Positions 3,128 through 21,059 of a stretch of DNA of 64,000 nt are shown here, piece after piece; positions within the stretch are counted from its first letter, which is position 1; every line of letters starts with the position of its first letter. The stretch covers positions 164,287 to 228,286 of the IMG/VR virus record IMGVR_UViG_3300032242_002041; one strand, written 5' to 3'. The notes beneath the pieces are model-generated. The model had not been told where the DNA came from, searched no databases, and worked only from the letters and a program-made list of their open reading frames with translations. Position numbers and translations under genes: made by a program.

Positions 3128-3133
3128 GTTACA

Positions 3134-3162
3134 ATTATACAATACTTGCCAACACTTGTCAA
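3134..3162 (-). promoter_or_regulatory. consensus sigma70 promoter
   Basis: TTGACA-17 nt-TATAAT on the minus strand immediately upstream of the PRT gene. Confidence 0.85.
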
Positions 3163-4823: not shown

Positions 4824-5341
4824 AGTGATTCCTGATCTACAAATTTGGGCCAAGCACGGTCTTTGTCACTGACTACCGCAGGTTCATGAAGCCAAGGCAG
4901 GCCAAGATCTGAATCGTTCCAGACAATGCCTGTTTCTGCGGTTGGTGCATAGTAGCCATCCAAGTGATACTGTATAACAGTGTCTGGCTCCAAGGTCAAT
5001 ACACCATGATAGCAACCGGGTGGAACTATTAACATACTAGGGTCTTGGTCAGTTAAAGTAAAACTAAAAATCTTACCGTAATTTGGACTATTTCGACGAC
5101 CATCGACAAATATGTCCTGTATGGTACCTTTGATCACTGAGATAGCTTTACAAGTGCGATTGGGCTGGCGCTGTGCGTGTAGGCCTCTAAGCGTATATGC
5201 TTTTTTGGTATAAGAAGTGTTGGTCTGCAAAAAGTCGTTAGCAAATCCTGCATCGGCAAGACGTTGCTTGTTATAAGTTTCACTAAACCATCCGCGATTG
5301 TCATGAAACTTTGTTAGGTTTACTAGTAGGTGATCTTGCAT
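4820..5341 (-). CDS. rmlC: dTDP-4-dehydrorhamnose 3,5-epimerase
   Basis: DNRGWFSE, TLRGLH, DGRRNSPNYG, VPPGCYHG, VSDKD. Confidence 0.9.
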   Translation of the reverse strand: MQDHLLVNLTKFHDNRGWFSETYNKQRLADAGFANDFLQTNTSYTKKAYTLRGLHAQRQPNRTCKAISVIKGTIQDIFVDGRRNSPNYGKIFSFTLTDQDPSMLIVPPGCYHGVLTLEPDTVIQYHLDGYYAPTAETGIVWNDSDLGLPWLHEPAVVSDKDRAWPKFVDQESL

Positions 5342-6381
5342 TAGATTTTAAGCCAGCGATCGTTTTTGAGTGTCCAAGTAACCATTTGTTTGATACGGGT
5401 GTCAAAATCATACTTGGGTTCCCAACCTAACCCTTTCATGTATTCGCCACTGAGACTGTAACGAAAATCGTTACCAGGACGCTCTGGATCGTGTCCTACC
5501 ATGACATATTTTAATTCTCGTCCTAGTAAGGTAGCAATTTTCTGGGCCACAACTAAATTACTAATTTCCAATTGACCAACAATGTTAAACTTGGGGCAAG
5601 TGGCACCGCCAAAGTCACTGGCCAGTGGAAAGCCCTTGTGTGGCAAGTCCATAATGAACATGGTGGCATCGGCTACATCTGCGGCATGCACCCAGTGGCG
5701 CAGTCCACTTTGAGTTCCTGTGGCTTCGTCACAGTAGATGACAACAGTTTCATCTGCCAATACCTTACGCACAACCAATGGAATAAACTTTTCTGGACTT
5801 TGACGCTCGCCAAACACGTTCATGGTGTGCGTACAGTAGATAGGCATGCCAAAGGTGTTTTCGTAGGCAATGCACAATTCTTCACCGCCGGCCTTGGTGG
5901 CACTATAAGGACTGCGACTGTTGTAGCGATCCCACTCTTGGTACTCCACACCTTCGGGGGCATCTCCAAACACTTCGTCTGTACCAAAATATATAAACTT
6001 TTCTAATTTGGGCAAATAATGTCTAGCGTAGTCCAACAGGTTACAGGTTCCTACCACGTTGTCTTGCACAAACATCATAGGGTTTTCGATCGAACGAGTA
6101 ACGTGGCTACCTGCGGCCATGTGAATGATAAAATCAACAGGACCAATTTGATGTGCCAACTGTGGGTTAATTTCGGCACGTAAATCATGATAAATGAACT
6201 TTAGGCGGCTCATGGCATCTGTGCCAAACTCTTGACTCAATTCATACAGTCGATTTAGATTGCCTGAAAAGTCCAAACGATCTAGACAGGTAATTTCATA
6301 TTCTTCGTGTTTGAGCAAGCGACGAATCATATGGTGCCCAATGAATCCTGCACCACCGGTTACTAATACAGTTTTTTTCAT
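5341..6381 (-). CDS. rmlB: dTDP-glucose 4,6-dehydratase
   Basis: GGAGFIG, AAGSHVTRSI, TDEVFG, SPYSATK, QSPEKFIP, RPGNDFRY. Confidence 0.9.
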   Translation of the reverse strand: MKKTVLVTGGAGFIGHHMIRRLLKHEEYEITCLDRLDFSGNLNRLYELSQEFGTDAMSRLKFIYHDLRAEINPQLAHQIGPVDFIIHMAAGSHVTRSIENPMMFVQDNVVGTCNLLDYARHYLPKLEKFIYFGTDEVFGDAPEGVEYQEWDRYNSRSPYSATKAGGEELCIAYENTFGMPIYCTHTMNVFGERQSPEKFIPLVVRKVLADETVVIYCDEATGTQSGLRHWVHAADVADATMFIMDLPHKGFPLASDFGGATCPKFNIVGQLEISNLVVAQKIATLLGRELKYVMVGHDPERPGNDFRYSLSGEYMKGLGWEPKYDFDTRIKQMVTWTLKNDRWLKI

Positions 6382-7248: not shown

Positions 7249-7764
7249 TTAGTCTTCGTAAGTAGCTGAATTAGCACCATGTTCAAACACTTCTACAGAT
7301 TTAATCCTAACTGTTGGATTGATCGGATAACGCATGTCGCCACTAGCCAACAGTTCAGCCATTTTGTTATAGGCCAGTTTGGCAAACATTTCACAGCCTA
7401 CTCCGGGCACAATGCGCAGATCACACAAGGCACCGCGTTCATACGGCAACTTGCTTAGATGATTTTTGCTGTCAACATTTACAATTTCGTTCATGTGTTT
7501 GAAAAAATCTAACATTGGATCGTCTTCGGCCACGACCAAAGTATGATCAAACATATAGTCTGCCCATGCTTTGAATTCTTTCAAACCACCAAAGTCCATA
7601 CACCAGTTTTTGTCATCTAGTGTATCACATTCAAAGATTAATTTGATACCAATTGAGTATCCGTGAAGTGTTGAGCAGTGACTATGAGTCGCTCTCCACT
7701 GTCTAAAACAGCATGAAAGTCCGCGATCGTTGCCGTAAGTTTTTGTTGAATAGTACTTTGCCAT
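7249..7764 (-). CDS. queD: 6-carboxy-5,6,7,8-tetrahydropterin synthase
   Basis: CSTLHGY, MDFGGLK, FDHT, GCE, VEVFEHGAN. Confidence 0.9.
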   Translation of the reverse strand: MAKYYSTKTYGNDRGLSCCFRQWRATHSHCSTLHGYSIGIKLIFECDTLDDKNWCMDFGGLKEFKAWADYMFDHTLVVAEDDPMLDFFKHMNEIVNVDSKNHLSKLPYERGALCDLRIVPGVGCEMFAKLAYNKMAELLASGDMRYPINPTVRIKSVEVFEHGANSATYED

Positions 7765-8368: not shown

Positions 8369-11020
8369 TTAATCTATCCAAAATCTAAGTTCGTGCATTA
8401 GTCGATATTGATTCTGCTGGGTTCCCATAACACTGAAACGATACATGGTCTTTTTATCAATCATGTTAGTGTATAATGCTCTAACATACGCTGTAGTTTG
8501 ATTCTGTATTGCTAGTTTTTTGTTAGTGTACACTATATTGCCGCTGTTGTCAACACCAGTCGGCATCTTTGCCTCCACATTGCCTGATAATACCACAGGC
8601 TTGACACCAGCATATACTCCAAGATCACCAAACTGATCTTCGGTATAACGATATCCGGTTTCAGCCCAAGCACCGACTATGTTATTAACCTTGGTTATTA
8701 ATCCTGGAGTAATGTTGGTTGTAACGTGCATCAAGCTGGCCTGTGTGCTAAAGCCACCATCTCGGTAAGTGGCCACATTGTCTAGGATGCCTGAATTGGT
8801 AACAGTGCCCCAAGCACCACCAAACGCCATCCAGGGATTGGTGTTTAGGTTGGTAAACTGAGCACCATAGGTAAACTTACCGTTTTTATAAATTTCTGGA
8901 ATACCTACAGAGTATTGTGTGGGCTTTTGTAGCATTCCAGGTCCTTGATCGTTACCAAAAAATGCATTACGATTTTCTGTAGCAACACGCATATTGCCAT
9001 AGGTTACTGGTGTGCCATTAACCAGATATTCTGCGTGGCTAGTTAAATTGTATTGATCAGTGTGTTCAGTGTTATAACCAAAACTATTCATGCCTGACAC
9101 ATTCATAAATTTAAGGTTGGTTGTAAACCCACGACCTACACTGTCAGTGACCAATGTATCGCTATCATCAAGCCCTAGACCCATTACGTATCCACGTATT
9201 GGTGCAAATCCTTTGCCACCACTTAGTGGTATTGACATATCGCCCACGGGCTGAAATACTTTAGTCGTGTCTAGTAAATTAAAACCAAAATAGTTAGTTG
9301 AGCTGGCTGCCAGCACGGTGTTGACTTGTGCATTACTCATCCACGGCCATACCTGTTTAATCGCCGTAACAGTTGCCTGAGTAGTGGTACTGGCCGTGTC
9401 TCCTAATTTGCTGAGATAGATAGCTTTTTGTTGTGTACCATTGCCGCTATAACTGATTGCTGTAGCAAGATACATGCTATTATCTGGCCCTTTAACAAAC
9501 ACAATACCATTGGCACCGCCGGCTGCACTGGCATTAATTGCCTTTTCAAGAGCCACCGATTGTCCTACAAAAGCATCAATGATGGCGGCATAGCTGGCCA
9601 CATATTTGTTTTCTTTAGTGTGTATTAATACTTGTGCGCCGGTAGTACTTCCCCAACCAGTTGCGGCTAATACGATGTCAGTTAACCCGTCGCCGTTAAC
9701 GTCTACAAGTTTAGGATTATAGTTTGCAGAAGTTTTAGTATCATACCCAACCAGGGTAGTATCAGTAACATCTATAAATGTGCCACCACCTTTGTTTTTT
9801 AAGAATTGTATCTCACTGAAGTCAGGCCATGCTCCATTAGTAAACCAAGGTCTACTAAAAATAACAGCACTAGTTAATCCAGAGTTGTCAAAGTCAAACG
9901 CTAACGCTCTATAATCGGTCGCTCCGCTAAAACCGTAACTATCCCATTTAGGTAAAAAGAATCTTGAGCCTGGCAAAGTACTGATCTTGGTTATTTCAAA
10001 GTCTAGTGTGCCGCGATTGGTGTCGGTCATAGCCCAGCTATATAAATTTGTGCTACAAGTTTTGCAACTAGTTACTCCAGAGTCTGTTAGAATAACCGTA
10101 CTAGTGCCGTTGCCCATAAAATCAGCAATAGCTACTGAAGCAGCAGATCCACCATAATCCAGCCCCGACACAGTATGAGCAACAAAATTATTAGTACGCG
10201 AACCAAATACAACCTTACTACCTGTTGTAAAGATATCGTCAATGCCATCACCGTTGATGTCGTAGACTGCACTGTCATGACCATTAATACCGAGTCCTAA
10301 ATCAACTCTAGTAAAACTTGAACCGTTATTAAGAAATAACCAACCAGATCCAATATTAGCACCATTATCTGTATTTGGTGAAACGTACATACTTTTTCTT
10401 CCACTACCATTAAAGTCACCAAACTTTACACTAGGTTCTGTACCTAAAATTACATTATCCGTTCCTGTGAACCATTTACTAGTTTTGTTTACTAACTGAC
10501 CGTTTTCCCAATCAAAAATGTTCAAATTATATGTAGGATAACTACCGCCATTGGTTGTACCAGAGCGACCTGCTGTAACAAGTTGTTGACCCGTTCCGGC
10601 AAGATTTTCAGCGTATAATGCACTTGAATCGTATTCGTACACTGCACTATTAATCGGAGTAACTGATCCAACACGAACCGGCGTGGCATATGGAACATAG
10701 GTATTTGTGGGTGTAGTGGTTGTGGGTGTAGTAGTGGGTGTAGTGGTTGTGGGTGTAGTGGTTGTAGTGGGTGCGGTAGTGGGTGTAGTGGTTGTAGTGG
10801 TTGTGGGTGTAGTAGTGGGTGTAGTGGTTGTGGGTGTAGTAGTGGGTGTAGTAGTAGGTGTGGTGGTTGTGGGTGTAGTAGTGGGTGTAGTAGTAGGTGT
10901 GGTAGGACCTGTACCTTGGGTAGGGGGCGCAGATGTACCTGGATTGTTTGCGCCTCCACCGCCGCCAGCACAAGCTACTAATTGTAGTACTACTGTTGCT
11001 AAAAGCAAAATCCGTTTCAT
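8369..11020 (-). CDS. large lipoprotein: Thr/Pro linker, FG-GAP/VCBS-like repeats, probable C-terminal beta-barrel
   Basis: Lipobox LVAC; DFNGSG, DINGDGIDD, DFMGNG, DFDNSG, DVNGDGLTD repeats; amphipathic beta-rich C-terminus ending LRFWID. Confidence 0.75.
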   Translation of the reverse strand: MKRILLLATVVLQLVACAGGGGGANNPGTSAPPTQGTGPTTPTTTPTTTPTTTTPTTTPTTTPTTTTPTTTPTTTTTTTPTTAPTTTTTPTTTTPTTTPTTTTPTNTYVPYATPVRVGSVTPINSAVYEYDSSALYAENLAGTGQQLVTAGRSGTTNGGSYPTYNLNIFDWENGQLVNKTSKWFTGTDNVILGTEPSVKFGDFNGSGRKSMYVSPNTDNGANIGSGWLFLNNGSSFTRVDLGLGINGHDSAVYDINGDGIDDIFTTGSKVVFGSRTNNFVAHTVSGLDYGGSAASVAIADFMGNGTSTVILTDSGVTSCKTCSTNLYSWAMTDTNRGTLDFEITKISTLPGSRFFLPKWDSYGFSGATDYRALAFDFDNSGLTSAVIFSRPWFTNGAWPDFSEIQFLKNKGGGTFIDVTDTTLVGYDTKTSANYNPKLVDVNGDGLTDIVLAATGWGSTTGAQVLIHTKENKYVASYAAIIDAFVGQSVALEKAINASAAGGANGIVFVKGPDNSMYLATAISYSGNGTQQKAIYLSKLGDTASTTTQATVTAIKQVWPWMSNAQVNTVLAASSTNYFGFNLLDTTKVFQPVGDMSIPLSGGKGFAPIRGYVMGLGLDDSDTLVTDSVGRGFTTNLKFMNVSGMNSFGYNTEHTDQYNLTSHAEYLVNGTPVTYGNMRVATENRNAFFGNDQGPGMLQKPTQYSVGIPEIYKNGKFTYGAQFTNLNTNPWMAFGGAWGTVTNSGILDNVATYRDGGFSTQASLMHVTTNITPGLITKVNNIVGAWAETGYRYTEDQFGDLGVYAGVKPVVLSGNVEAKMPTGVDNSGNIVYTNKKLAIQNQTTAYVRALYTNMIDKKTMYRFSVMGTQQNQYRLMHELRFWID
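10707..10905. repeat. low-complexity tandem repeat encoding a (PTTT/PTTTT)n linker
   Basis: Repeated gggtgtagtagt / gggtgtagtggttgt units inside the CDS. Confidence 0.95.
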
Positions 11021-11051
11021 TGTATAACCTAGATTAATTAACAATACTAGT

Positions 11052-11110: not shown

Positions 11111-11917
11111 TTATCTAGGCGCAAAGTCCTGTTGTAGTTTAATATTATCCATAAATTCTTTTTTAGTTCCAGGATCTGTATTAAACGCACCTTTAAGTAC
11201 TGTAGTCTGTGTTAGACTACTGTGCGCCATAATGCCTCGGTTTTCGCAACAACCGTGTGTAGCTTGAATATAAACTCCAACATTCTCACTGTCGGTTGCC
11301 CGCATTATTTCTCTCGCGATGTCATTGCATAGCTCTTCTTGCAAAGTACCACGCCTAGCGCACCACTGAGCTATCCTAGTATATTTGCTAAGACCAATGA
11401 GTTTATTTGCGGCAATAATACCAATATAAGCAACACCACTGACAGGTTGATGGTGATGACTACACATGCTACGGAGCTCACTACGAACCACAAGCATACC
11501 TTCGTAACGATCCGCTGAGTCATTTGGAAAAGCTGTTGCATCTGGTGCTGGATCATATCGACCTCCCATAATTTCGTTATAATACATTTTAGCTAGACGT
11601 CTAGCGGTACCTTTACTGTTAGGATCATTTTCACGATCAATTAATAGTGTGTCCAGTACCTGTTCAAATGCCACCGTGGCTTCATTGATTAGTTGTTCTT
11701 TATCACCTTCATGTAAATAATCACTGATATTATCGCCTGCCCAGAAACGCTTCTTATCACGTTTCATCTTAAAGCGGATAGCATCGGCTAAATTTGCTTC
11801 TTTATAGCCCTTATCGTCCATGCCAACATCTTCATAGCCTGGGTGATACGGTGCTTCTTCTACTAATTTAGAATTAGCCAATGCGTTTTTTAAGTCTTCT
11901 GATGTAAATGTTGTCAA
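11111..11917 (-). CDS. folE: GTP cyclohydrolase I
   Basis: SMCSHHHQP, IGLSKYTRI, LQEEL, HGCCENRG; TTG start. Confidence 0.95.
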   Translation of the reverse strand: MTTFTSEDLKNALANSKLVEEAPYHPGYEDVGMDDKGYKEANLADAIRFKMKRDKKRFWAGDNISDYLHEGDKEQLINEATVAFEQVLDTLLIDRENDPNSKGTARRLAKMYYNEIMGGRYDPAPDATAFPNDSADRYEGMLVVRSELRSMCSHHHQPVSGVAYIGIIAANKLIGLSKYTRIAQWCARRGTLQEELCNDIAREIMRATDSENVGVYIQATHGCCENRGIMAHSSLTQTTVLKGAFNTDPGTKKEFMDNIKLQQDFAPR

Positions 11918-11997: not shown

Positions 11998-12591
11998 TTA
12001 ATCAATTATTTTAATTTTTCGGCAATCTGGATATGCTATGAATTTAGGCGCTTCGTTAACCAGTGGCAGTAATTGACTTCCTAATTCTGCTTCTTCCGTT
12101 GTGGGTTTATAGTGATAACCTACGTGGAACACTTCTTGTGCTTGCCAGGGCACAATCCTCAGGTCACGACCATCATAGCGTTGAGCCAACATTACCTTGT
12201 AGGCCACAGGATCATCTAGCAAGATAGCACCACAGCGACCAATCTCTAATGGCTTGGTGCGCCCAAAACTTACACAAGTTAATGTGCCAGGACGATACAT
12301 GTTGCGCTCTAATCTGCGAGCACTATCCCAAATCCTAGTAAATTCAAATTTATATTCACCAATCCATTCTTGTCTGTTTGGGTGTTCGTGATAACTGTAC
12401 TTGATACCCAGCTTGTGCATGGTCATAGGCACACTCAAATATGTAAAAGGAGTAAAACAAGTTTCTTTTACACGGTCGTATCTCATACATAATTCAATAG
12501 CATGAGTACAACAGTCAGTCATTACAGTATAAGGAGCACCTGTGTACTCGGCTAACTCTTGTTCAAATTTTAGTATACTGTCAAAGCTCAT
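11998..12591 (-). CDS. short DegT/DnrJ-like PLP aminotransferase
   Basis: FEQELAEYTGAPY.V..DCCTHAIELC, DSA, SFGRTKPL..GRCGAIL. Confidence 0.75.
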   Translation of the reverse strand: MSFDSILKFEQELAEYTGAPYTVMTDCCTHAIELCMRYDRVKETCFTPFTYLSVPMTMHKLGIKYSYHEHPNRQEWIGEYKFEFTRIWDSARRLERNMYRPGTLTCVSFGRTKPLEIGRCGAILLDDPVAYKVMLAQRYDGRDLRIVPWQAQEVFHVGYHYKPTTEEAELGSQLLPLVNEAPKFIAYPDCRKIKIID

Positions 12592-13538
12592 TGATTATAC
12601 CACTTCCATACATGGTTAATTATATCTGTCATAACAAATTTTGGTTGCCAGCCACTGACCTTTGTAAACTTGCCAGCATCAGCTGTTAGAATAGCTGGGT
12701 CACCTTCGCGCTTTGGTCCATGTAACATGGGAATATTAACGCCGGTAATCTGTGCAGACGCACGAACAATTTCAAGATTACTATATCCAGTGTTAGTACC
12801 GAGATTATAGATGTCGCTAGGAATAGTTCGATCCATTGCCAAGATATGTGCCTCGGCCAAGTCTTCCACGTGAATATAATCACGAATACAAGTGCCATCT
12901 GGTGTAGGATAATTAGTTCCATACAAAGTAAAATCTTGTTTGTTTTTAACTGATTCTAATACTCGAGCAATAATATGTGTTGCACCTGCGGCTTGTCCAT
13001 GCCGGGCTAGGCTATCTGCACCACACGCATTAAAATAACGAAAACTCACATAGTCTAAACCATAAGCACGATGATAACTGGCCAACATCCAATCAATCAT
13101 CAACTTGCTTTCGCCATACGGGCTGATCGGTTCTTTGGGATCAATTTCCTGCACAGGAGTTATGACGGGATTGCCGTAGGTTGCAGCACTGCTACTAAAA
13201 ATAAATCTAACTTGTTTATCGTGATTCCTAATCAAATAGTCTAGTAGGATTTTAGTTTTGATAAAATTGTTGTTGTAGTACTCTTGAGGATCTTGCATAC
13301 TAGGACCAACTAAGCTGGTACCAGCACAATGAATAACAGCGTCTGGACAAAATCGCTTGATAGCATCCAGCCCTAGCTCAGCTGCAAAGTCTCCAGTATG
13401 CCACTGGCACGGAACAGGAATCAAGTTACCAGGAGGCATTACCCGATCAATCGCTAATACATCGTGCCCGTCATCCACTAATTTTAATAATGTTTCCCCG
13501 CCAATGAATCCAGCAGCACCAGTGACTACTACTTTCAT
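12588..13538 (-). CDS. galE: UDP-glucose 4-epimerase
   Basis: GAAGFIG, FSSSAATYG, YGESK, RYFNACGA, DGTCIRDYIHV. Confidence 0.9.
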   Translation of the reverse strand: MKVVVTGAAGFIGGETLLKLVDDGHDVLAIDRVMPPGNLIPVPCQWHTGDFAAELGLDAIKRFCPDAVIHCAGTSLVGPSMQDPQEYYNNNFIKTKILLDYLIRNHDKQVRFIFSSSAATYGNPVITPVQEIDPKEPISPYGESKLMIDWMLASYHRAYGLDYVSFRYFNACGADSLARHGQAAGATHIIARVLESVKNKQDFTLYGTNYPTPDGTCIRDYIHVEDLAEAHILAMDRTIPSDIYNLGTNTGYSNLEIVRASAQITGVNIPMLHGPKREGDPAILTADAGKFTKVSGWQPKFVMTDIINHVWKWYNQ

Positions 13539-14740
13539 CCTTCAATTTTCCTTACGTGATACTTGGCTTGGCTTACATGATCGCGATAACGATTGCCTGC
13601 ACGATTCCACTGTTCACCGTTACCTTCTAAGATGTCCACAATACGATCCACAGTGCCATCAGTCCAGTCACTGATCAGGCCTGTATTGTGATGTAATTCA
13701 CCTAACAAGTTTTCTAACTTGTGATAAGCGTCATCAATGCTCCAAGGAACATATAACCTGTTAGGATCGTCAGCAAAAGTTTCAGGGAAACTGCGATAAG
13801 CAGGATAAAGCACATTAGAGCCAAGTGTGTCTGCTTCCGAGACGGTGTTGCTGACCCAGTCTTGTAAAGCACAATTAAACAATACCCGAGTATCATTGAG
13901 CAAATTATAGTAATCATTTTTCTTTAAGTTTTCATAGATTGTAAGTTTACCTTCGCTTTGCAAAACTCTTGCTCTAGTTACATATTCTGAATTATTACTA
14001 CGCAATGGACCACCTTGGAATATGGCAAATTCAATATCTTTATGACGACCTTGGCTATAGTACATGTCAATCAAATCCATAAAGAAACCTGGTTGTTTCT
14101 CTTGGTCAAATCTAGCTGCAAACCCCACTCGGATCTTACGTTCATTAAATGGTTTAATATTTTGAGCGCCACCAATGCGTTCTAGCACCTCTTCTTTGCC
14201 AAAAGCAAGTCCAGAGATATTGTAGATTGGAGCCGACCAACCTGCAATACGCATATGAGCCACCATCTCTTCGTTAGTGGCCAACACACCTGTTACGAAC
14301 TCATTGACCATCTTCTCATATAAGTCCATCCACTTGGCCATACCCCAGACATGAACAAAGTCGTCTGGATCAATTGCTTGTGCCAGACAACGCACAAAGA
14401 CCTTAGGACGTTGCTCCGCTGGAATTTGATCCATAATGTATGGCAACGATTCGATGCCTGGCTGGAACATGTCTTCAAAGTAGATAACGTCTTCACTAGT
14501 TACATCACCGTTACGCATCATTTGAACCAAGTTCATCATTTGACTCATGCCAAAGTAACTGCGACCGTGTGCGTCTAGCACCTGTCCAACACTAATACTT
14601 TGCGTGTTGTCAATAGTATTGCCAGGAACATAGACTACATCTAGTCCACGACGATCAAATACACGCCGATTCCATTCTGTAAGTTGTAGAGTGTAGCGAG
14701 CCTCATATGACTCCAAGCCCATATAGAATAATTTACGCAC
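13535..14740 (-). CDS. GT-B fold glycosyltransferase-like protein
   Basis: FAARFDQEKQP and LYPAYRSFPE resemble the GT-B C-terminal donor-binding region; likely GTG start 14740 (track start 14881 overlaps the upstream gene). Confidence 0.65.
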   Translation of the reverse strand: MRKLFYMGLESYEARYTLQLTEWNRRVFDRRGLDVVYVPGNTIDNTQSISVGQVLDAHGRSYFGMSQMMNLVQMMRNGDVTSEDVIYFEDMFQPGIESLPYIMDQIPAEQRPKVFVRCLAQAIDPDDFVHVWGMAKWMDLYEKMVNEFVTGVLATNEEMVAHMRIAGWSAPIYNISGLAFGKEEVLERIGGAQNIKPFNERKIRVGFAARFDQEKQPGFFMDLIDMYYSQGRHKDIEFAIFQGGPLRSNNSEYVTRARVLQSEGKLTIYENLKKNDYYNLLNDTRVLFNCALQDWVSNTVSEADTLGSNVLYPAYRSFPETFADDPNRLYVPWSIDDAYHKLENLLGELHHNTGLISDWTDGTVDRIVDILEGNGEQWNRAGNRYRDHVSQAKYHVRKIEG

Positions 14741-14960
14741 GGCGATATCCTGAGAATCTACGAGTATCTTCTTCCCACATGTTTTTGGCATTCTTGCCTT
14801 GAGTAAATTTGTTATACTGTTGCCAGGCATAAGAACGGAAGTTGTAGAGATCTTCTTCTCTATAACGGTATCCGTAGTCACGACAGAATTCCAAGTAGTT
14901 TGACAAATCTTCTAATGCTTGAAGAGCTCTTGGGTTTACACGATGTTGGGGTTTGCCCAT
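14733..14960 (-). CDS. hypothetical protein
   Basis: ORF with SD (AGGAAC) between dpdL and the GT gene. Confidence 0.65.
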   Translation of the reverse strand: MGKPQHRVNPRALQALEDLSNYLEFCRDYGYRYREEDLYNFRSYAWQQYNKFTQGKNAKNMWEEDTRRFSGYRRA

Positions 14961-14970
14961 GATAGTTCCT

Positions 14971-15432
14971 TTAAATTACAGTTGATTGTGTTGGACGAGT
15001 AAGATTATAACTAATGGAGCATCCGTTCTCGCCGTCTTCGGATACTTCAATTACTACAGCACGACCGGGATAGCGTTCGGCTATCTTTAAATATAAATCA
15101 TCGGCAATCATTTCACATGATTTCCAGTCTAGTTCTAAAACGGGATTCGAAACAATTCCGTTATTGGAATAGAGATTTTCAAGCCACCGTTTGAATTGGA
15201 TGAATTCGATATCTCTGTCGTTATGGAAGACATCGATTGACACCCGGAAATGAAAGATATGGCGATGAGGACTGGCCAAAAACGATACATCATATTCTCC
15301 TGCTGTGCATAATGCTGGGTCTGTTGCAGCCGCTGGATAGCGATGAATGCCTTCCTTACGGAATGTAACCCAAATTTGTCTCTGGGCTGCCGCTTTAATG
15401 CGTTCAATAGTTTCGCGTTCTTGTTGTATCAT
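14971..15432 (-). CDS. dpdL: QueD-like T-fold protein, probable CDG decarboxylase DpdL
   Basis: LASPHRHIF matches LxxxHRHxF; DRDIEFI, SCEMIA, VSEDGENG; second QueD paralogue in the cluster. Confidence 0.75.
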   Translation of the reverse strand: MIQQERETIERIKAAAQRQIWVTFRKEGIHRYPAAATDPALCTAGEYDVSFLASPHRHIFHFRVSIDVFHNDRDIEFIQFKRWLENLYSNNGIVSNPVLELDWKSCEMIADDLYLKIAERYPGRAVVIEVSEDGENGCSISYNLTRPTQSTVI

Positions 15433-16604
15433 TTCTGGTGGCTTTCTATATTAGTATTATTAAACGAGTCAATGGCATCATACATATCTGGAAAAATTGC
15501 ACGACTATTTAATTTTCTATCTTGGTCTAATTTGTTAAATTCTTCTACTGTATATTCAAGTCCGTCCCAATTGGATTTATAGGGAGTTCGATCGTCGTTT
15601 AACGAGGCAATTACGTTGTCAATGCCAAGAATATTTGAATAATCATTTTTAGAAATTCGCTGTCTAACCAACTCTCTCTGGTGATCAGTTAGTCGTTGAA
15701 TTGCCCACGGACCACCATTATCTCTCAGATTGTAGATATTAATAGTTATTGCTCGATGAGATATATTCAAAGTTTGATGCACCAAATCAATAAAATCCCA
15801 AATTGACAACGAGTTAATATTCATAAACACCATGTTAAAACTAAGGTGATGCTTTGCAATCAAGTTAATTGTGTGTAAATTTTCTAAGAAAACATTCCAT
15901 TTTCCGGGCCAACGAATATATTCATATTGTTCTGCAATTGATTCTCCGCTAACTAACCATTGTACATTACTAAACTGTTTCAACAATTCAAAAATTTTAT
16001 TTTCGTGTATTAGGCTAAGATTAGTATTAACACAAATACGACAAGATTTATTAACTTCTAATAATTTTCTTAAGACTATTTCGTTTTCTTTTATCATCAA
16101 CGGCTCGCCACCAGCAAGATATATTTCTTTAAGGTCGGCAGCAGATTCTAAAACATAATCTAACAAATCTCCTTTGGCTTCTTTCATCTTAACTACTTGA
16201 TATTTCTGTTCGGCCCATAGTGAGCTGAGCTCAGGGTCACAATATATGCAGGCAAAATTGCAGGTATTGTTCCAACGCAAATCAAGATATTTTAAATTAA
16301 AGTTATCAATATTGTTGTAAAACTCATCACCAAGATGGTTATATTTCTTTTTAAAATGATGTTGTAAAGTATGAGTACCAATCTGAGAGTGGCAATTTTT
16401 ACACCCTTCAACCGGAATATCATTTAACATCATTGTTTTGATATCGAGATTATTAGAGCCGCTTATTGTGTCTTTGATTGCAGGAGTTTTATTAATATTA
16501 CCTAATTTATTTTTACTCACACAACAATTTTCTATATTGCCTTGGGGGTCAATATACAGTGAAACCCACGGCGCTGGACAGAAATGTTTATTATCTATGG
16601 TCAT
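15429..16604 (-). CDS. radical SAM protein with N-terminal SPASM/twitch-like Cys domain
   Basis: FCPAPW..CC..GCKNC, then CNFACIYC, AGGEP. Confidence 0.85.
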   Translation of the reverse strand: MTIDNKHFCPAPWVSLYIDPQGNIENCCVSKNKLGNINKTPAIKDTISGSNNLDIKTMMLNDIPVEGCKNCHSQIGTHTLQHHFKKKYNHLGDEFYNNIDNFNLKYLDLRWNNTCNFACIYCDPELSSLWAEQKYQVVKMKEAKGDLLDYVLESAADLKEIYLAGGEPLMIKENEIVLRKLLEVNKSCRICVNTNLSLIHENKIFELLKQFSNVQWLVSGESIAEQYEYIRWPGKWNVFLENLHTINLIAKHHLSFNMVFMNINSLSIWDFIDLVHQTLNISHRAITINIYNLRDNGGPWAIQRLTDHQRELVRQRISKNDYSNILGIDNVIASLNDDRTPYKSNWDGLEYTVEEFNKLDQDRKLNSRAIFPDMYDAIDSFNNTNIESHQK

Positions 16605-16930
16605 TTTTGTAGCAATTCCATAGTTACAATTTTACCAATTGATTCAGATAAGTTTTCATCAGGGGTAACAATGTGTAGTTTAATCCGTTCTTCGTCTTTT
16701 TTGTGGTCATAATATTTGGTTTCAATTACTGTACCACCCGATACCTGTTGTACACGGAAGCGTATTGGATCCGGAAGTTCGAGACAATCTTTCGTCTCAA
16801 CGTCACAGTCATCAAAACTGACGCTAATACTTCCACGTCCAATCCTAGCAGGTTTACTTTTTTCTTCACTTAATTCGTAACTAAAATCCCAACCCCATGC
16901 AACTATCTTTGCCCATAACCATCTAATCAT
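16601..16930 (-). CDS. hypothetical protein
   Basis: Overlapping operon ORF. Confidence 0.65.
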   Translation of the reverse strand: MIRWLWAKIVAWGWDFSYELSEEKSKPARIGRGSISVSFDDCDVETKDCLELPDPIRFRVQQVSGGTVIETKYYDHKKDEERIKLHIVTPDENLSESIGKIVTMELLQK

Positions 16931-17442
16931 TTGATAACCTCGTCCTTTGTGTATTTAGACCAGTCAGTAAACACCTCACGTTTTTGTAAATCGTGTAACG
17001 AGTGGCACCAGACGCCTGGGTTTGTTGCTGCAAAATCTCGGTCATCAATTTTAAGAGTAGCATTGTATCCAAACTGTTTAATATAAGGAAGTTTAACGCT
17101 AATCATTGGAATGAAGTTATGGAATTCTACCAGTGCGGATTCAAGTAATCCTTCTGCCTGTTGAATATCTAAATCCAAAGTACATAACCAGCCAGCTTCC
17201 AAGCAGTCTTGTACCATGACTTCCCAATCACGCCATGCATCACCGTCATTTTTATCCAATGCTGGAAAACTCTGATTGGCACCAAAGTAGATATGTTCAA
17301 TGTTGTTATTCTTTGCTTCCTGTTGGACGATTTGTGAATCCTGTACACCTACTACAAATAGTGTACGGCGTCCAAACGCAGGGGTATGTTCTACTTCGGT
17401 TCCTGTAAAGAAACTTACTTCTTCGTGTCCTGCTCTAATCAT
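16927..17442 (-). CDS. conserved hypothetical protein of the deazaguanine cluster (paralogue within 26930..27655)
   Basis: GTEVEHTPAFGRRTLFV..HIYF..GVW..FTDWSKYTKD; likely start 17442. Confidence 0.7.
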   Translation of the reverse strand: MIRAGHEEVSFFTGTEVEHTPAFGRRTLFVVGVQDSQIVQQEAKNNNIEHIYFGANQSFPALDKNDGDAWRDWEVMVQDCLEAGWLCTLDLDIQQAEGLLESALVEFHNFIPMISVKLPYIKQFGYNATLKIDDRDFAATNPGVWCHSLHDLQKREVFTDWSKYTKDEVIK

Positions 17443-17641
17443 TTTGTTCTGTATTATAATGGGTGGATGGATTATTTTCTTGTTTAAGTATAACAATTTG
17501 TTTTTTTAATTGCAACCTTTGTTTCTTCAAATCAGTTAGTTCAACATCATCAAACACACCGGTGCTTTCCAAACCGTCAATTCTTTTGTTGAGTGCGTGG
17601 TGTGCTTCTTCTAAATGTTTAATTCTTCTTTCCCAAGACAT
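17435..17641 (-). CDS. small coiled-coil protein (YdcH/DUF465-like)
   Basis: HHALNKRI...LKKQRLQLKKQI pattern. Confidence 0.6.
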   Translation of the reverse strand: MSWERRIKHLEEAHHALNKRIDGLESTGVFDDVELTDLKKQRLQLKKQIVILKQENNPSTHYNTEQND

Positions 17642-19341
17642 TAGGCCTCCAGATTATCTAGTTTTGATTCATCTAAATCGGCATCATCTCCATCAATGCC
17701 ATCGTTTGATTCCTCTACTTCAAATAATGCATTAAATTGACTGTGTGCGTTTTTGGCTTTTTTACCTTTGAATCCGCGTGTGCCTACAATGTCCATCCAG
17801 TAACGATCATAAGACTCAATAATGGCTTCGGCTTCGGCACGATCAGGCGTAGCAAAGATGGCTTCTACAATGTCTTTAAATCGTGTATGATCTCCGTTTT
17901 GATCCCACATCATGGCGGGCCAAGATCCGTTGTCATATTCACGATTAGCTCTTTGTACAGCTTCTAGGTGCATCCAAACATTATGGCCCATTAGTAATGC
18001 ATAACTAAAACTATCCCACGATGTCTTGCCTTCTTTGCCAATCTTGTTCAACATACCAGGTTGATAGTAACAAACATCCTTCATTTGTAACTGTAGACTG
18101 ATTGGACTCTCGTCAAAGTGATCAACAAGACCATCGGCTACTACCGCTTGTCCATACGGACGAGTATCTGTTGAATACTTTTTATCGTCCGCAATTGGAC
18201 TCATTCGATAGCACCACTTTTCGTTGTGTGGAAGGTCGATGTGGTGGTAGACTTGCCCATTTGCTGTAGCCAAAAACGGCGAAGCACAATCAAAACTAAT
18301 AGTAAAAGAAGGATTAACATACTTACGAACTGCACGTTGAATGTCTGTAAGTAATACTGCCCACTCTAATTTACTTGTGCCCAAGAAGTGCATCCAATCA
18401 TGCACACCTTCTTTTAACAAGCCATCGTGGCGTAATGCTACAAGTCTACGCAGGACCAAATGCACATCGCACATGTTCTGACCACCCATTGACCAACCAT
18501 CAAAGTGTGTGTCTGGGTATATGGCAGGGTCACAATAGTGTTTCATTGTTTCATACCAACGATCTGCGTCAGCGTGATTGGCACCTTGTAAAACATTAAG
18601 AACTTTCATGCCACCATTCTTGGCGCCCTTGCGGTGCTTCATGTAATAGTCATTATTATATTTGGTAGCAGCCACAGCTTCTTCTAGTGTAGTAATGCCA
18701 CACTTGGCGCTGGCGTGTTTGTCATGTATGACCCAGGTTGGTATATCAAGTGTCATACCATAGTCGGCAACACCATCTAACCATTTGAGTACAGCTTCAC
18801 GTTTCTTCTGTGCAGCATCTAATAGATTTTGATAATTTTTAACATGATCAATCTTAATGTATTTGGTATTACCATTCTTATCGTGCTTGGGGGTACCATC
18901 GGGTTTAAGATCCGGCACATGCTCAACACCCTTGGCCCGGAGCTCGGCCATCTTGGCCAACACCACTGGACTTGTTGGGTCGCGCCACTCACCTTCCCAT
19001 AGACCTTTGGCAATTTGGAATCCACCTGAGTCGCCTAGCATTACAGTGCCAGGTTCACGATTACGAACCATATCCTCTGACCAGTCTTGTTTGGTTAGAT
19101 CCAAGTTGGCATGTCCACCCGAATACAAAGACCACTTATATGGAAATAAGCTCTTGGCGCTGTTAAGCCAGTTCATCATTTCCATATCTTTCATGCCAGC
19201 TGGCATACGAGTTTTTGGGTCTACATACGGTCCGTTTACTGGATCTCGTTGTTTACCTATGTAAGTGGCATAGAAACCACTAATAGCTGGCAAGAACACA
19301 GCATAATCGTTTTGTTTGGCTGTAAGATTATCTTGAGTCAT
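17641..19341 (-). CDS. dpdA: divergent tRNA-guanine transglycosylase-like protein (DpdA family, probably DpdA3-type)
   Basis: DSGGFQ, MTLDIP, VLQG, HFLGTS, SFDCASP TGT core motifs; in folE/queD/queE cluster. Confidence 0.8.
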   Translation of the reverse strand: MTQDNLTAKQNDYAVFLPAISGFYATYIGKQRDPVNGPYVDPKTRMPAGMKDMEMMNWLNSAKSLFPYKWSLYSGGHANLDLTKQDWSEDMVRNREPGTVMLGDSGGFQIAKGLWEGEWRDPTSPVVLAKMAELRAKGVEHVPDLKPDGTPKHDKNGNTKYIKIDHVKNYQNLLDAAQKKREAVLKWLDGVADYGMTLDIPTWVIHDKHASAKCGITTLEEAVAATKYNNDYYMKHRKGAKNGGMKVLNVLQGANHADADRWYETMKHYCDPAIYPDTHFDGWSMGGQNMCDVHLVLRRLVALRHDGLLKEGVHDWMHFLGTSKLEWAVLLTDIQRAVRKYVNPSFTISFDCASPFLATANGQVYHHIDLPHNEKWCYRMSPIADDKKYSTDTRPYGQAVVADGLVDHFDESPISLQLQMKDVCYYQPGMLNKIGKEGKTSWDSFSYALLMGHNVWMHLEAVQRANREYDNGSWPAMMWDQNGDHTRFKDIVEAIFATPDRAEAEAIIESYDRYWMDIVGTRGFKGKKAKNAHSQFNALFEVEESNDGIDGDDADLDESKLDNLEA

Positions 19342-19344
19342 CTA

Positions 19345-20067
19345 TTATTTAGACTGTGCTGGAATGATATAAGTGTAAGTAGCCAATCCAGAATCAACAG
19401 TAATCTGTGCTGCGCCATCGTCGCTGATCTTCATAACTTTATCGCCGGTTAAATCTAAAATACTAATAACTGTTTTAATTGGCCAACTCCAAGCACGTTT
19501 AAGAGTACCTGTTACACCTGGGTGGAACACAAAGTTACCTGCGTGTGTTGAATGGTCGCCGAAGAAGAATTTTAAATCGCCGTCTTCTGTTTTTGCTTGA
19601 AAGTTAACTTCTTCGGCATTGGCACTGGCCTGCATCTTCAATCGTTGAATAGCTGCTACAGTTGGTTCAAACTCAACGTGCCAAGGAACGCCTTTAAATT
19701 TAACTGTTTTGGCCTTTTGATCAACATGTTCGGCAGCCATAAAGCGATAATTATTTTTAAAGTCGCCGGTGGCATTTTTAAAATTAATACCATCTAGTGC
19801 CCCGGTATCTTTCTTTGTTACACCAAGTTCTGCACCTTCTTTATACTCTGGCAAGTTTAATAAAATATTAAGTTTAGCCAAATTTGGCATGCCAAACAAA
19901 CCAATAAACTCTGGCACCGGGTTGGTATATTTGCCTTCTACAATTACGCTACGATCTTCAGCAATACCAAATATTTCGGTTGCCTTGTCATCGCCTGTAA
20001 TTTTAACTAGGTCAATACAGCCTAATTTGTGTGTGTGTTCTACTAAGTCTAGTAAATGATCTTTCAT
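19345..20067 (-). CDS. DNA polymerase sliding clamp (gp45/PCNA-like)
   Basis: About 240 aa two-domain beta-rich protein ending YTYIIPA, near polB; SD AGGAGA before ATG 20067. Confidence 0.65.
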   Translation of the reverse strand: MKDHLLDLVEHTHKLGCIDLVKITGDDKATEIFGIAEDRSVIVEGKYTNPVPEFIGLFGMPNLAKLNILLNLPEYKEGAELGVTKKDTGALDGINFKNATGDFKNNYRFMAAEHVDQKAKTVKFKGVPWHVEFEPTVAAIQRLKMQASANAEEVNFQAKTEDGDLKFFFGDHSTHAGNFVFHPGVTGTLKRAWSWPIKTVISILDLTGDKVMKISDDGAAQITVDSGLATYTYIIPAQSK

Positions 20068-20098
20068 ATAATTCTCCTTGTTGTTGATTGTACGTGGT

Positions 20099-21058
20099 TT
20101 ATTTAGATTCTGCAACGGGTTTAGGTAATATTTGTGCCAAGGCCTGGCCACCACGGTATGATTGCCATTTTCCTGGTTTACGAAATTCTATCCAGGTCCA
20201 CGGCCCGTTGTCGTGATAGGTAAAGTGTTGTTCAAATCCTAAACTTTCAGCAAACGATAGAATCAGTGACCCCGGTGTGTACAGCCCTGTTGTTGCTTCA
20301 ACTGCTTTGACCCCTTCCCATCGATCACAGTCATTAAAGGTCATTAAGAGCATGCCCCCTGGGCGCATCTTTCTATAAAGTTCTATTAGGTATTGACGAA
20401 TTATTTCAAAAGGTCTATGGTTAAAATAATTCCAAGCAAGTACTAATCCAAATTGATTATTGGGCAATTGCCACAATATATCCTGATCTTGATCTTCTCG
20501 TATTGTGTAAGTTCGTAATCTACGTTGATATGCTTCATTGAACTGTGATAAAACTGGTTTTAACAGTTCATAATCTTCGTCAACAAGATATATAGGATCA
20601 TTGTTAACCATGTTGTGTATCCAAGATTCTACTCCAGGACGCAAAATCATAGTTGTATTTTGCCAACCAGAAACTCGCGTAATGCGATTTATGAGAAGTT
20701 CTCGAGTCTGGTCTGATACAGGCAAACGACTACTAAGAACATTATTAACATACTCGTTTGGGTCTCTCCATTTGTACCAACTATATCGATAAGAACGAAA
20801 TTCTTCATATGTTTTATAACTATTTTGTAGGTATGGCTGTTCTTCTTTTCTAATTTGATCGTATACTTGACGTTTAATAGTGTTGAATGCACTTTCAAAT
20901 TGATCAAATGAATTTAGTACATCGGAACGCAGATTTTCTAATTCTGAATGCTGAGATATTTGAATAATTTTTTGTAATTCTGCGTCAGCAAACCGTTTGG
21001 CATCTATTGCGGTTATAGAACACAGTTGATTGTAGTAGTTAACTAGATCGCTTAACAT
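20099..21058 (-). CDS. class I SAM methyltransferase-like protein
   Basis: FGLVLAWNYFNH...LYRKMRPGGMLL motif. Confidence 0.55.
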   Translation of the reverse strand: MLSDLVNYYNQLCSITAIDAKRFADAELQKIIQISQHSELENLRSDVLNSFDQFESAFNTIKRQVYDQIRKEEQPYLQNSYKTYEEFRSYRYSWYKWRDPNEYVNNVLSSRLPVSDQTRELLINRITRVSGWQNTTMILRPGVESWIHNMVNNDPIYLVDEDYELLKPVLSQFNEAYQRRLRTYTIREDQDQDILWQLPNNQFGLVLAWNYFNHRPFEIIRQYLIELYRKMRPGGMLLMTFNDCDRWEGVKAVEATTGLYTPGSLILSFAESLGFEQHFTYHDNGPWTWIEFRKPGKWQSYRGGQALAQILPKPVAESK

Positions 21059-21059
21059 A

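Follow-up and report, generated by a model that had tools for sequence, protein, structure and literature searches.

A glycosyltransferase (GT) predicted to have the GT-B fold is encoded inside the 7-deazaguanine DNA-modification gene set of a freshwater jumbo phage. The same enzyme family stays inside that gene set in many unrelated phages, which points to an undescribed sugar-decorated purine in phage DNA. The link between the GT and the deazaguanine pathway is strongly supported, whereas the product, a glycosylated 7-deazaguanine in DNA, is inferred. The window analyzed here is a stretch of 64,000 nucleotides (IMG/VR record IMGVR_UViG_3300032242_002041, positions 164,287 to 228,286). It is part of a 228-kb fragment, about 66% complete, of a phage genome of ~340 kb. 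The relevant features of the window are as follows.

17641-19341, minus strand: DpdA-like guanine transglycosylase (566 aa), a divergent subfamily shared with PA5oct gp316
16927-17496, minus strand: conserved protein (189 aa), homologue of ACP17 ASD50402
15429-16604, minus strand: radical SAM protein with an N-terminal SPASM domain
14971-15432, minus strand: DpdL (QueD-like T-fold, proposed 7-carboxy-7-deazaguanine decarboxylase)
14733-14960, minus strand: conserved basic ORF (75 aa)
13535-14722, minus strand: GT4-like GT-B glycosyltransferase (395 aa)
12588-13538, minus strand: UDP-glucose 4-epimerase (GalE)
11998-12591, minus strand: half-size DegT-like PLP enzyme (197 aa)
11111-11917, minus strand: GTP cyclohydrolase I (FolE), first step of the deazaguanine pathway
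7249-7764, minus strand: QueD (CPH4 synthase), CxxxHGY variant
3876-6381, minus strand: RmlB-like 4,6-dehydratase (5341-6381), RmlC 3,5-epimerase (4820-5341) and RmlD-like SDR (3876-4853)
1767-3142, minus strand: QueE-like CDG synthase (1767-2666) and purine phosphoribosyltransferase (PRT; 2630-3142)

The original prediction described the order dpdL, small ORF, GT-B-like gene, galE, short DegT and folE with coupled starts and stops, and this observation was confirmed. The radical SAM/DpdL, GT/GalE and GalE/DegT pairs each overlap by 4 nt, DpdL and the small ORF as well as the small ORF and the GT are each 10 nt apart, and DegT and FolE are separated by 80 nt. One correction is required: the mechanically called ORF 13535-14881, which begins with GTG, overlaps the small ORF, and the real GT start is the ATG at 14722, giving 395 aa in agreement with the 394-402 aa of most homologues. 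The start codon of FolE (PF01227, E 8e-39; phrog_2197) is uncertain, as the ORF is listed from a TTG at 11917 and the Pfam match begins at residue 85. The arrangement is not due to chance, as the block PolB-clamp-DpdA-...-DpdL-ORF75-GT-GalE-DegT-FolE recurs in nearly all of 80 related viral contigs. In these relatives, the 75-aa ORF (pI 9.4, no family hit) is found in 79 of 80 at 67% median identity, GalE in 78 of 80 and the 189-aa protein in 72 of 80. The latter has no family or atlas assignment and matches ASD50402, which precedes DpdA in ACP17 (blastp 4e-13). In contrast, the radical SAM gene (Radical_SAM at residues 113-274, SPASM at 9-72) is found in only 15 of 80 and is a variable insert that does not belong to the core.

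To determine whether the surrounding genes form a DpdL-type system, we examined them one by one. DpdL carries LASPHRHIF, which fits the published signature LxxxHRHxF, is homologous to the DpdL proteins of phages phiST and ACP17, and matches phrog_17812 (E 1.5e-34). Residues H30, H56, H58, E76, SCE and ED(G) are invariant in a 13-sequence alignment. QueD (PF01242, E 7e-15) carries the CxxxHGY motif also found in phiST, ACP17, BUCT-ZZ01 and 51 relatives. QueE matches the annotated QueE of X1 (blastp 4e-44) and of PA5oct (1e-28), and the adjacent PRT matches PF00156 (E 5e-17); the same QueE-PRT pair occurs in BUCT-ZZ01. QueC is absent, as the only PP-loop hit is a NadE-like gene scoring 2.8e-48 to NAD_synthase and 1.9e-5 to QueC. 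The apparently missing DpdA is the 566-aa gene located 2.2 kb upstream of DpdL. Searches with Pfam and NCBIfam models (including PF01702 and TIGR00449) and with DpdA2 and DpdA3 queries gave no hit, and the protein is not assignable to DpdA1-4. However, DSGGFQ (residues 104-109, with D104) and SFDC (349-352, with D351) are invariant in 18 relatives, the AF2 model (pLDDT 79, pTM 0.81) has as its top 50 Foldseek PDB hits only Z. mobilis TGT (E 2e-8), and protein-language hits go to TGT/DpdA clusters. Its PA5oct homologue EST35_0316 (blastp 3e-76) sits directly upstream of the GT and DpdL of that phage, and PA5oct virion DNA resists restriction enzymes with G-containing sites (PMC12191111). Activity of the window protein on DNA is inferred from these features. 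Among the closest known systems is that of Cellulophaga phage phiST (Cui et al. 2023, PMC10516641), which has FolE, QueD (CxxxHGY) and QueE without QueC, DpdL, a TGT-superfamily DNA transglycosylase and a location among replication genes. phiST differs by having DpdA3, no GT and plain dDG in its DNA, while here a GT4-like GT and sugar-nucleotide genes are integral to the module.

The GT fold could not be recognized with Pfam on the window protein itself; a six-frame search gave 15.4 bits (E 1.3e-3) for Glycos_transf_1 (PF00534), below the gathering score. The BUCT-ZZ01 homologue just passes (26.5 against a cut-off of 26.4), and a few close homologues carry a precomputed PF00534 assignment. The AF2 model is confident (pLDDT 95.6, pTM 0.93) and all top Foldseek and VIA structural matches are GT-B enzymes. 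Foldseek returned BshA, MshA and glycogen synthase (E 2e-11), and VIA gave Z 26.3 (over 339 residues) to 20 with GT4, GT5 and GT20 enzymes. The best matches are retaining GT4 small-molecule enzymes (sucrose-phosphate synthase, BshA, MshA, PimA and the BH4 glucosyltransferase BGluT), at Z 22-26 over about 310-340 residues with only 9-14% identity, and profile hits go to PglH/WlaC, GlgM and MshA. Across 109 sequences, R204-x4-K209 is invariant and D288-x7-E296 is nearly invariant, with D replacing the first E of the E-x7-E motif; these positions bind the donor in GT4 enzymes. The N-terminal acceptor domain has its own set of invariant acidic and aromatic residues. The original prediction drew an analogy with T4 DNA glucosyltransferases, which holds only at the level of the fold. 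T4 alpha-glucosyltransferase (AGT, family GT72, 1y6f) ranks 30th, behind 29 PDB representatives, at Z 20.0 with 9% identity, the GT of phage HY126 (9iqz) scores Z 18.6, both over about 300 residues, and T4 beta-glucosyltransferase (BGT, family GT63) is not among the top 50. No sequence similarity to AGT or the HY126 GT was detectable, and a sequence search of the PDB returned neither AGT nor BGT.

We next analyzed whether the GT is linked to dpd genes in relatives, as absence of such linkage had been set beforehand as grounds for rejecting the interpretation; the result was the opposite. Firstly, 18 of 23 phage records with the GT also hold DpdL, against about 0.013 expected by chance (P about 6e-58). 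They represent six cultured lineages with differing gene order: ACP17, PA5oct, X1/BUDD, Phosso, BCSR5 and BUCT-ZZ01. In ACP17, DpdA2, a homologue of the window GT and DpdL lie in a row. Secondly, in a distant GT subfamily, 71 of 80 viral contigs have DpdL within 2.1 kb of the GT at a median gap of 213 nt; of the other nine, six have the GT overlapping a DpdA-like gene near QueE or FolE and three are cut at the contig end. Thirdly, six of eight sampled subfamilies have DpdL within 1.5 kb, one more is probable, and one was represented by a contig too short to tell. The family comprises 733 clusters at 50% identity, is restricted to viruses and almost never leaves 7-deazaguanine genes; it is virtually absent from 185,579 prokaryote genomes, with three hits, all on short MAG contigs. 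Combined, these results strongly support a functional tie to the deazaguanine pathway, with a DpdA-DpdL-GT triad as the core.

The interpretation offered in the original prediction, a sugar hypermodification of DNA tied to the deazaguanine pathway, is thus supported only in part. We favor, at about even confidence, a model in which the GT is a dedicated third component of the module. FolE, QueD and QueE would make 7-carboxy-7-deazaguanine (CDG), as shown only by homology, and DpdL would convert it to 7-deazaguanine, as proposed by Cui et al. on grounds short of biochemical proof. The TGT-fold DpdA would exchange guanine in phage DNA for the deazapurine (inferred from fold, motifs and the behavior of PA5oct DNA), and the GT would transfer a sugar from an NDP-sugar onto the deazaguanine, either on the free base before insertion or on the base in DNA. 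In this lineage GalE, the mini-DegT and a variable set of sugar-tailoring genes, here the RmlB/RmlC/reductase trio, would supply and diversify the donor sugar. The expected glycosylated 7-deazaguanine would protect DNA against nucleases and perhaps against defences that have learned to recognise plain deazaguanine. The gene order, motifs, predicted folds and linkage are results of the analysis, while retaining glycosyl transfer by the GT, DNA as its acceptor, the presence of a modified base in virion DNA, the identity of the product and the roles of the sugar genes are inferred. The position of the sugar is speculative, as 7-deazaguanine has no obvious hydroxyl handle; candidates are the exocyclic N2 and a C-glycoside on the electron-rich pyrrole carbon freed by decarboxylation. 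Known DNA glycosyltransferases act on hydroxylated pyrimidines, as for glucosyl-5hmC in T4 and arabinosyl-5-hydroxycytosine in HY126. The second modified base also considered in the original prediction finds no support, as no thymidylate-synthase or hydroxymethylase family gene (PF00303) was found in the 228-kb fragment, although absence is not proven in a genome that is about 66% complete. No competing acceptor pathway is visible in the fragment, which also has no other GT of the PF00534 type.

Precedents exist for sugar attachment to deazaguanine bases. HuiG of huimycin biosynthesis in Kutzneria albida (PMC7439116), a GT with a GT4-type domain (PF13439) encoded next to FolE, QueD and QueE genes, attaches GlcNAc to the exocyclic N2 of a 7-deazaguanine base. 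HuiG is a bacterial secondary-metabolite enzyme acting on a free, O6-methylated preQ0 base, and its cluster has QueC and no DpdA or DpdL. In eukaryotic tRNA, QTMAN/GTDC1 and QTGAL decorate queuosine, a 7-deazaguanine derivative already inserted by a TGT enzyme; the acceptor is a hydroxyl of the cyclopentenediol side chain, whereas the pathway here stops at CDG/DG without such a side chain and the presumed target is DNA.

The GT might instead glycosylate a free heterocycle that never enters DNA, giving a soluble deazapurine glycoside (huimycin- or dapiramicin-like) or a pterin glycoside used as an inhibitor, a signal or a storage form during infection. The closest structures are small-molecule enzymes, including the UDP-glucose:tetrahydrobiopterin glucosyltransferase 5zer (Z 22.0), and the family is acidic (median pI 5.8), which fits a small-molecule acceptor at least as well as DNA. 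FolE and PTPS-like T-fold genes also start pterin synthesis, HuiG acts on a free base, and a PRT lies near QueE, as in the toyocamycin and tubercidin pathways, and near the GT in 27 of 80 distant loci. However, a DpdA-like transglycosylase, for which a soluble product would have no need, is adjacent or near in 55 of 80 distant loci and in all cultured examples checked. QueE is specific to deazapurines, which argues against a pterin end product, PA5oct DNA behaves as G-modified, and the module sits inside the PolB-clamp-DpdA replication block. We consider this alternative unlikely.

A further possibility is that the GT is an auxiliary step in making or delivering 7-deazaguanine, through a transient glycosyl intermediate or carrier or as a structural partner of DpdA and DpdL, the final base being plain dDG. 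Cui et al. could not obtain dDG in E. coli from ACP17 dpdL plus dpdA alone and suggested that other enzymes may be required. The ACP17 GT lies between exactly those two genes, and neither the GT nor the small conserved gene flanking them was part of that experiment; the tight adjacency of the triad also fits this view. In contrast, phiST has dDG with DpdL and DpdA3 and no GT, indicating that the GT is not needed for the base itself, the donor-binding residues are conserved as in a true transferase, and a dedicated GalE with variable deoxy- or amino-sugar tailoring genes makes little sense for a transient intermediate. This reading appears doubtful.

In the literature we searched, natural DNA glycosylation is reported only on hydroxylated pyrimidines, all known 7-deazaguanine DNA bases are sugar-free, and no report of a glycosylated purine-type base in DNA was found. 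In the boldest form of the model, which we hold only tentatively, the triad makes the first glycosylated purine analogue in any natural DNA, linked at N2 or as a C-glycoside, with a sugar that differs between phage lineages because of the hypervariable tailoring cassette next to the GT. The triad is widespread in environmental jumbo and T4-like phages. If true, this would be a new chemical class of DNA hypermodification, with consequences for restriction and CRISPR evasion, type IV and glycosylase-type defences, sequencing artefacts and enzyme tools, namely a GT that labels deazaguanine. It would also bear on the failed reconstitution of dDG from ACP17 genes and on the chemically unidentified modified G of PA5oct, a therapy-relevant Pseudomonas jumbo phage that carries this triad. 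As several cultured phages hold the module, the hypothesis is directly testable.

Finally, GT, GalE and mini-DegT could act on something else (another DNA base, a virion protein or the host envelope), their position reflecting only shared timing of expression in the replication module. GalE and mini-DegT genes do occur in ordinary phage glycan clusters without dpd genes nearby, in Flavobacterium phage immuto_2-6A and Synechococcus phage S-SCSM2R, and may therefore serve another glycan; an 891-aa FG-GAP protein and the Rml-type genes lie in the same stretch of the window. This is the least likely alternative, as the GT family is linked to DpdL and DpdA across many lineages that lack any other sugar genes (ACP17, X1, PA5oct, Phosso, and the loci L090-L097 and L100-L179), the linkage persists while gene order differs, and no hydroxymethylase family gene is present in this fragment. 

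In the favored model, a sugar supply for the GT is supported by GalE, which is translationally coupled to the GT, and by the genes around the GT in relatives. GalE scores 296.9 bits against TIGR01179, above the equivalog cut-off of 262.3 (PF01370, E 2e-53), and a GalE-like SDR lies near the GT in 36 of 80 distant loci. The mini-DegT (Pfam DegT, E 4e-12) lacks the full fold-type I domain of about 360 aa and matches only profile positions 25-87 and, by NF008687, about 169-197; its length of 192-212 aa is conserved in 66 relatives and in two distant phages. Its residues 101-129 align with NF008687 positions 169-197, placing K113 where the Schiff-base lysine K181 of WecE lies, and D89, which would correspond to the Asp that binds the pyridine nitrogen, S108, F109 and K113 are invariant across 20 sequences, including the homologues from immuto_2-6A and S-SCSM2R. 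The deoxysugar cassette, assigned by Pfam, is specific to this genome, as RmlC is found in 0 of 80 relatives and the RmlB and SDR hits there are only 24-28% identical, i.e. cross-hits to GalE. The slots around the GT in relatives hold an NDP-hexose C-methyltransferase, radical SAM enzymes, a 2OG oxygenase, an aminotransferase and other SDRs.

The 228,286-bp IMG/VR virus record that contains the window (bases 164287-228286) was rated about 66% complete by CheckV, and nearly all long ORFs of the window lie on the minus strand. Related contigs reach 317-353 kb. To place the virus, we first considered a cyanophage origin, as the only phage-database hit of the glycosyltransferase (GT) was Synechococcus phage BUCT-ZZ01. 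However, the family-B polymerase (PolB) was closest to those of Sinorhizobium phage Phosso (50%), Agrobacterium phage Atu_ph07 (46%) and Rak2-like jumbo phages (42%), and a cyanophage origin was rejected although BUCT-ZZ01 shares the module. The only sequencing runs in which the region was found are DNA metagenomes, with no RNA, one of them labelled freshwater. The sequence is therefore from a freshwater jumbo myovirus of unknown host.

The original prediction described a GT-B-like gene, galE and a short DegT gene wedged between dpdL and folE, with coupled starts and stops, and this arrangement was confirmed. Read 5' to 3' on the minus strand, the genes are as follows.

Genes of the dpdL-folE interval and the gene preceding it
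15429-16604, minus strand, radical SAM/SPASM protein
14971-15432, minus strand, DpdL
14733-14960, minus strand, 75-aa ORF (ORF75)
13535-14722, minus strand, 395-aa GT
12588-13538, minus strand, GalE
11998-12591, minus strand, 197-aa DegT-like protein
11111-11917, minus strand, FolE

The radical SAM gene and dpdL, the GT gene and galE, and galE and the DegT gene each overlap by 4 nt, whereas dpdL and ORF75, and ORF75 and the GT gene, are 10 nt apart. The start of the GT is the ATG at 14722 and not the GTG at 14881 of the mechanical ORF. DpdL carries LASPHRHIF, which fits the published signature LxxxHRHxF that distinguishes it from QueD; it is 32% identical to the phiST protein and 53% identical to the ACP17 protein named in the paper reporting that signature, and it shares the conserved His, Glu, SCE and EDG positions. 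GalE passes the GalE equivalog threshold. The short DegT is not a pseudogene: its length (192-212 aa) and the residues D89, S108, F109 and K113 (the lysine of SFxxxK) are invariant in 20 sequences, including homologues in Flavobacterium phage immuto_2-6A and Synechococcus phage S-SCSM2R. The radical SAM protein at 15429-16604, directly upstream of DpdL, and a second one at 23802-24875 have their SPASM domain N-terminal to the radical SAM core (SPASM 9-72 and radical SAM 113-274 in the former, SPASM 26-91 and radical SAM 132-294 in the latter), which is the reverse of the usual order.

To identify the GT, Pfam, PHROGs and NCBIfam were searched and gave no significant hit. A full HMMER search of 1.84 billion representatives found 733 clusters at 50% identity and, with 109 of them used as the alignment, AlphaFold2 gave a model with a pLDDT of 95.6 and a pTM of 0.93. 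Sequence searches of the PDB gave nothing with the single GT and only weak GT4 hits with the profile. In contrast, searches with the predicted structure by Foldseek and VIA-align both returned GT-B enzymes of the retaining GT4, GT5 and GT20 kind: sucrose-phosphate synthase (Z 26.3), BshA (Z 25.0), PglH (Z 24.7), glycogen synthase, PimA and MshA, and BH4 glucosyltransferase (Z 22.0). T4 alpha-glucosyltransferase appeared at rank 30 (Z 20.0), the GT of phage HY126, whose DNA carries arabinosylated 5-hydroxycytosine, scored Z 18.6, and T4 beta-GT was not in the top 50. R204-x4-K209 is invariant and D288-x7-E296 nearly so; in GT4 enzymes these are the diphosphate- and ribose-binding motifs. The pocket of the N-domain is lined by the invariant R9, D84, D121 and E136 and by conserved aromatic residues. 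As inferred from fold and motifs, the protein is thus very probably an active NDP-sugar transferase, and the analogy with the T4 DNA glucosyltransferases made in the original prediction holds at the level of fold only. Isoelectric points gave no information on DNA binding, because both the GT and the DpdA-like protein are acidic.

We next analyzed whether the GT is linked to deazaguanine genes in relatives, as had been proposed beforehand as a test, and this linkage is the main result. Firstly, in 80 close relatives a block is conserved that comprises PolB, a methyltransferase-like gene, the clamp, a 566-aa protein, a 189-aa protein, DpdL, ORF75, GT, GalE, DegT and FolE, then HIT, QueD and a 274-aa protein. 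By contrast, the radical SAM gene was found in only 15 of 80, the FG-GAP protein in 14 of 80 and the Rml-type genes in none (RmlC in 0 of 80). The FG-GAP protein is an 891-aa repeat protein (8369-11044) inserted between FolE and the HIT gene, inside the metabolic module, and is 38% identical in the relatives that have it. The methyltransferase-like gene between PolB and the clamp (20099-21070) is fast-evolving, with weak class I SAM-MTase hits, a median identity of 38% among relatives and a length varying from 309 to 573 aa. An atlas search with the 189-aa protein returned only noise-level scores.

Secondly, the linkage was examined in cultured phages. In Acidovorax phage ACP17, the gene between the DpdA2-type transglycosylase (ASD50403) and DpdL (ASD50405) is a homologue of the window GT (ASD50404; blastp 1e-10), with weak Glycos_transf_1 hits of its own. 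The DpdA assignment of ASD50403 was inferred by us from its match to TIGR00449 (4.6e-7) and its homology to the DpdA2 of Vibrio phages nt-1, KVP40 and VH7D. A tblastn search with the ACP17 GT found 23 phage records out of 50,697, and 18 of them are among the 28 records that hold DpdL, compared to an expected overlap of 0.013 (hypergeometric P 6e-58); after collapsing to six independent lineages the P is about 3e-16, under an assumed 5,000 lineages. In ACP17, PA5oct, X1/BUDD, Phosso, BCSR5 and BUCT-ZZ01 the two genes are 0-4 kb apart, in differing order.

Thirdly, eight members from eight different subfamilies of the GT, 30-42% identical to the window protein, were looked up: six have DpdL within 1.5 kb, one has a 118-aa PTPS-type gene beside QueE and FolE, and one lies on a contig of only 2.7 kb, too short to be judged. 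Fourthly, 80 viral contigs whose GT is only 37-53% identical to a distant member were scanned with HMMs. DpdL was present in 71, at a median distance of 213 nt and a maximum of 2.1 kb. Of the nine without it, three are cut at the contig end, and the other six have the GT overlapping a DpdA-like gene, two of these also showing QueE and FolE nearby. Within 6 kb, FolE occurred in 62, QueE in 53, a DpdA of either type in 55, a GalE-like SDR in 36 and a PRTase in 27, and the commonest order was DpdA-DpdL-GT. Finally, a scan of one genome for each of 185,579 prokaryote species with a subfamily alignment found three loci, all on MAG contigs, two of them only about 4 kb long, and the family is in effect viral.

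As the Pfam TGT model (PF01702) found nothing in this genome, we looked for a DpdA by other means. The negative result is uninformative, because the model also misses the accepted DpdAs of phiST and ACP17. Searches of the genome by tblastn and with profiles, using phiST DpdA3 and the DpdA2 of ACP17, BUCT-ZZ01 and X1, gave nothing either, and the DpdA here belongs to another subfamily. The gene at 19345-20154 was considered as a DpdA3 candidate because of its size, but it encodes a gp45-like sliding clamp. The 566-aa protein at 17641-19341, which gets no significant match to the Pfam TGT/DpdA or NCBIfam tgt models, fills the role, as inferred from its motifs and predicted fold. It has invariant DSGGFQ and SFDC motifs, which correspond to the Asp102 and Asp280 motifs of Z. 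mobilis TGT, and its protein-language neighbours carry TGT or DpdA domains. A profile search of PDB sequences with this protein gave nothing, but its AlphaFold2 model (pLDDT 79, pTM 0.81) has Z. mobilis TGT as all of its top 50 PDB matches, at E about 2e-8. It is homologous to gp316 of PA5oct (EST35_0316; 3e-76), which lies directly upstream of the PA5oct GT and DpdL, and to a Phosso gene at 323-325 kb, and looks like an unnamed DpdA subfamily with large insertions and a disordered C-terminal tail. ACP17, X1 and BUCT-ZZ01 instead use a long DpdA2. The DpdA2 proteins of these three GT-bearing phages (ACP17, locus L003:6725-7999; BUCT-ZZ01, L001:10328-11578; X1, L085:7112-8425), and that of pf16, are about 420-440 aa; only their first ~255 residues match the DpdA2 of Vibrio phages, so that they carry a C-terminal extension of about 170 aa without an assigned role.

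On the sugar side, GalE is coupled to the GT. In relatives, the slots between ORF75, GT, GalE and DegT hold different tailoring enzymes (loci L030:9090-16821, L019:12138-15016, L010:12133-13161, L020:11218-11964 and L052:11226-12655): an NDP-hexose C-methyltransferase (PF08421/PF08484), a B12-binding radical SAM enzyme and another radical SAM enzyme, a 2OG-Fe(II) oxygenase, an aminotransferase, a DUF6071 protein and alternative SDRs, which together form a hypervariable sugar cassette. This genome alone adds an RmlB-like dehydratase, RmlC and a reductase-like SDR. We infer that this pattern of a fixed transferase with changing sugar chemistry is what an arms race over a displayed glycan would produce. 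The assignment of the mini-DegT and GalE to this pathway is weaker than that of the GT, because both types also occur in phage glycan clusters that are not next to dpd genes; an unrelated target is one of the rival explanations. The half-size DegT (11998-12591; also loci L088:7968-8612 and L089:9004-9591) is a distinct conserved family, found in immuto_2-6A, whose DNA carries fdPreQ1, in S-SCSM2R and in two 0.6-Mb uncultured phages. In immuto_2-6A and S-SCSM2R, whose context was read, it sits inside a glycosyltransferase-rich cluster.

The gene content, predicted folds, motifs and linkage described here are results of the analysis, whereas the chemistry is inferred. That FolE, QueD and QueE make CDG, that DpdL gives 7-deazaguanine and that DpdA exchanges it for G in DNA is inferred from the established pathway and from Cui et al. 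2023; that the GT transfers a sugar, and adds it to the deazaguanine, is inferred by us. Transfer could occur before insertion, on the free base, which fits the small-molecule GT neighbours and the acidic protein, or after insertion, on DNA, as in T4. A soluble deazapurine or pterin glycoside was considered as a rival product. With respect to the attachment atom, HuiG of huimycin biosynthesis shows that a GT can glycosylate N2 of a 7-deazaguanine base. A C-glycoside at the pyrrole carbon exposed by decarboxylation would explain why DpdL and the GT travel together, but it has no precedent in DNA. A further rival is a helper role of the GT in making dDG. phiST shows that DpdL works without the GT and yields plain dDG; the GT is therefore an add-on, much as glucosylation is to hydroxymethylcytosine. 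The original interpretation, a sugar hypermodification of DNA tied to the deazaguanine pathway, is thus partly supported: the link is supported, while the chemistry remains inferred. In the literature searched, DpdL occurs in only one work and no paper combines deazaguanine with a phage glycosyltransferase acting on it, so that, as far as could be seen, the DpdA-DpdL-GT association is undescribed. We regard the module as a Dpd system that differs in having a dedicated glycosyltransferase arm. That it encodes a new class of DNA base modification is possible, but somewhat less likely than not.

Within the genome fragment, no QueC and no thymidylate-synthase or hydroxymethylase family gene was found, and the window GT is its only match to the Glycos_transf_1 model (PF00534). 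A NadE-like PP-loop amidotransferase (436-1185; NAD_synthase 2.8e-48, with a weak QueC N-terminal match) lies downstream of QueE and could serve ordinary NAD metabolism or an amidation of the CDG carboxylate; it was seen in only 2 of 80 relatives, although it lies outside the 10-kb flank in most of them. A purine phosphoribosyltransferase (2630-3142) recurs next to QueE (27 of 80 distant loci; also BUCT-ZZ01 L001:7075-7536 and PA5oct, locus L086:9324-9758). It could salvage the guanine that DpdA releases or, alternatively, make a deazaguanine nucleotide, as in the toyocamycin and tubercidin pathways. The QueD of the window (7249-7764) and the phage QueD proteins of loci L001-L004, including that of phiST, all carry CxxxHGY instead of the canonical CxxxHGH. 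On a 7.9-kb metagenomic contig (L092:1111-7858), a DpdA-like/DpdL/GT/QueE cluster lies next to a resolvase and a RES-domain gene, and this may be a plasmid or another mobile element rather than a lytic phage. At another GT-bearing locus (L094:9076-11151), a 691-aa gene with an intein (Intein_splicing, LAGLIDADG) lies directly after the GT and is followed by a UDG-PolA fusion.
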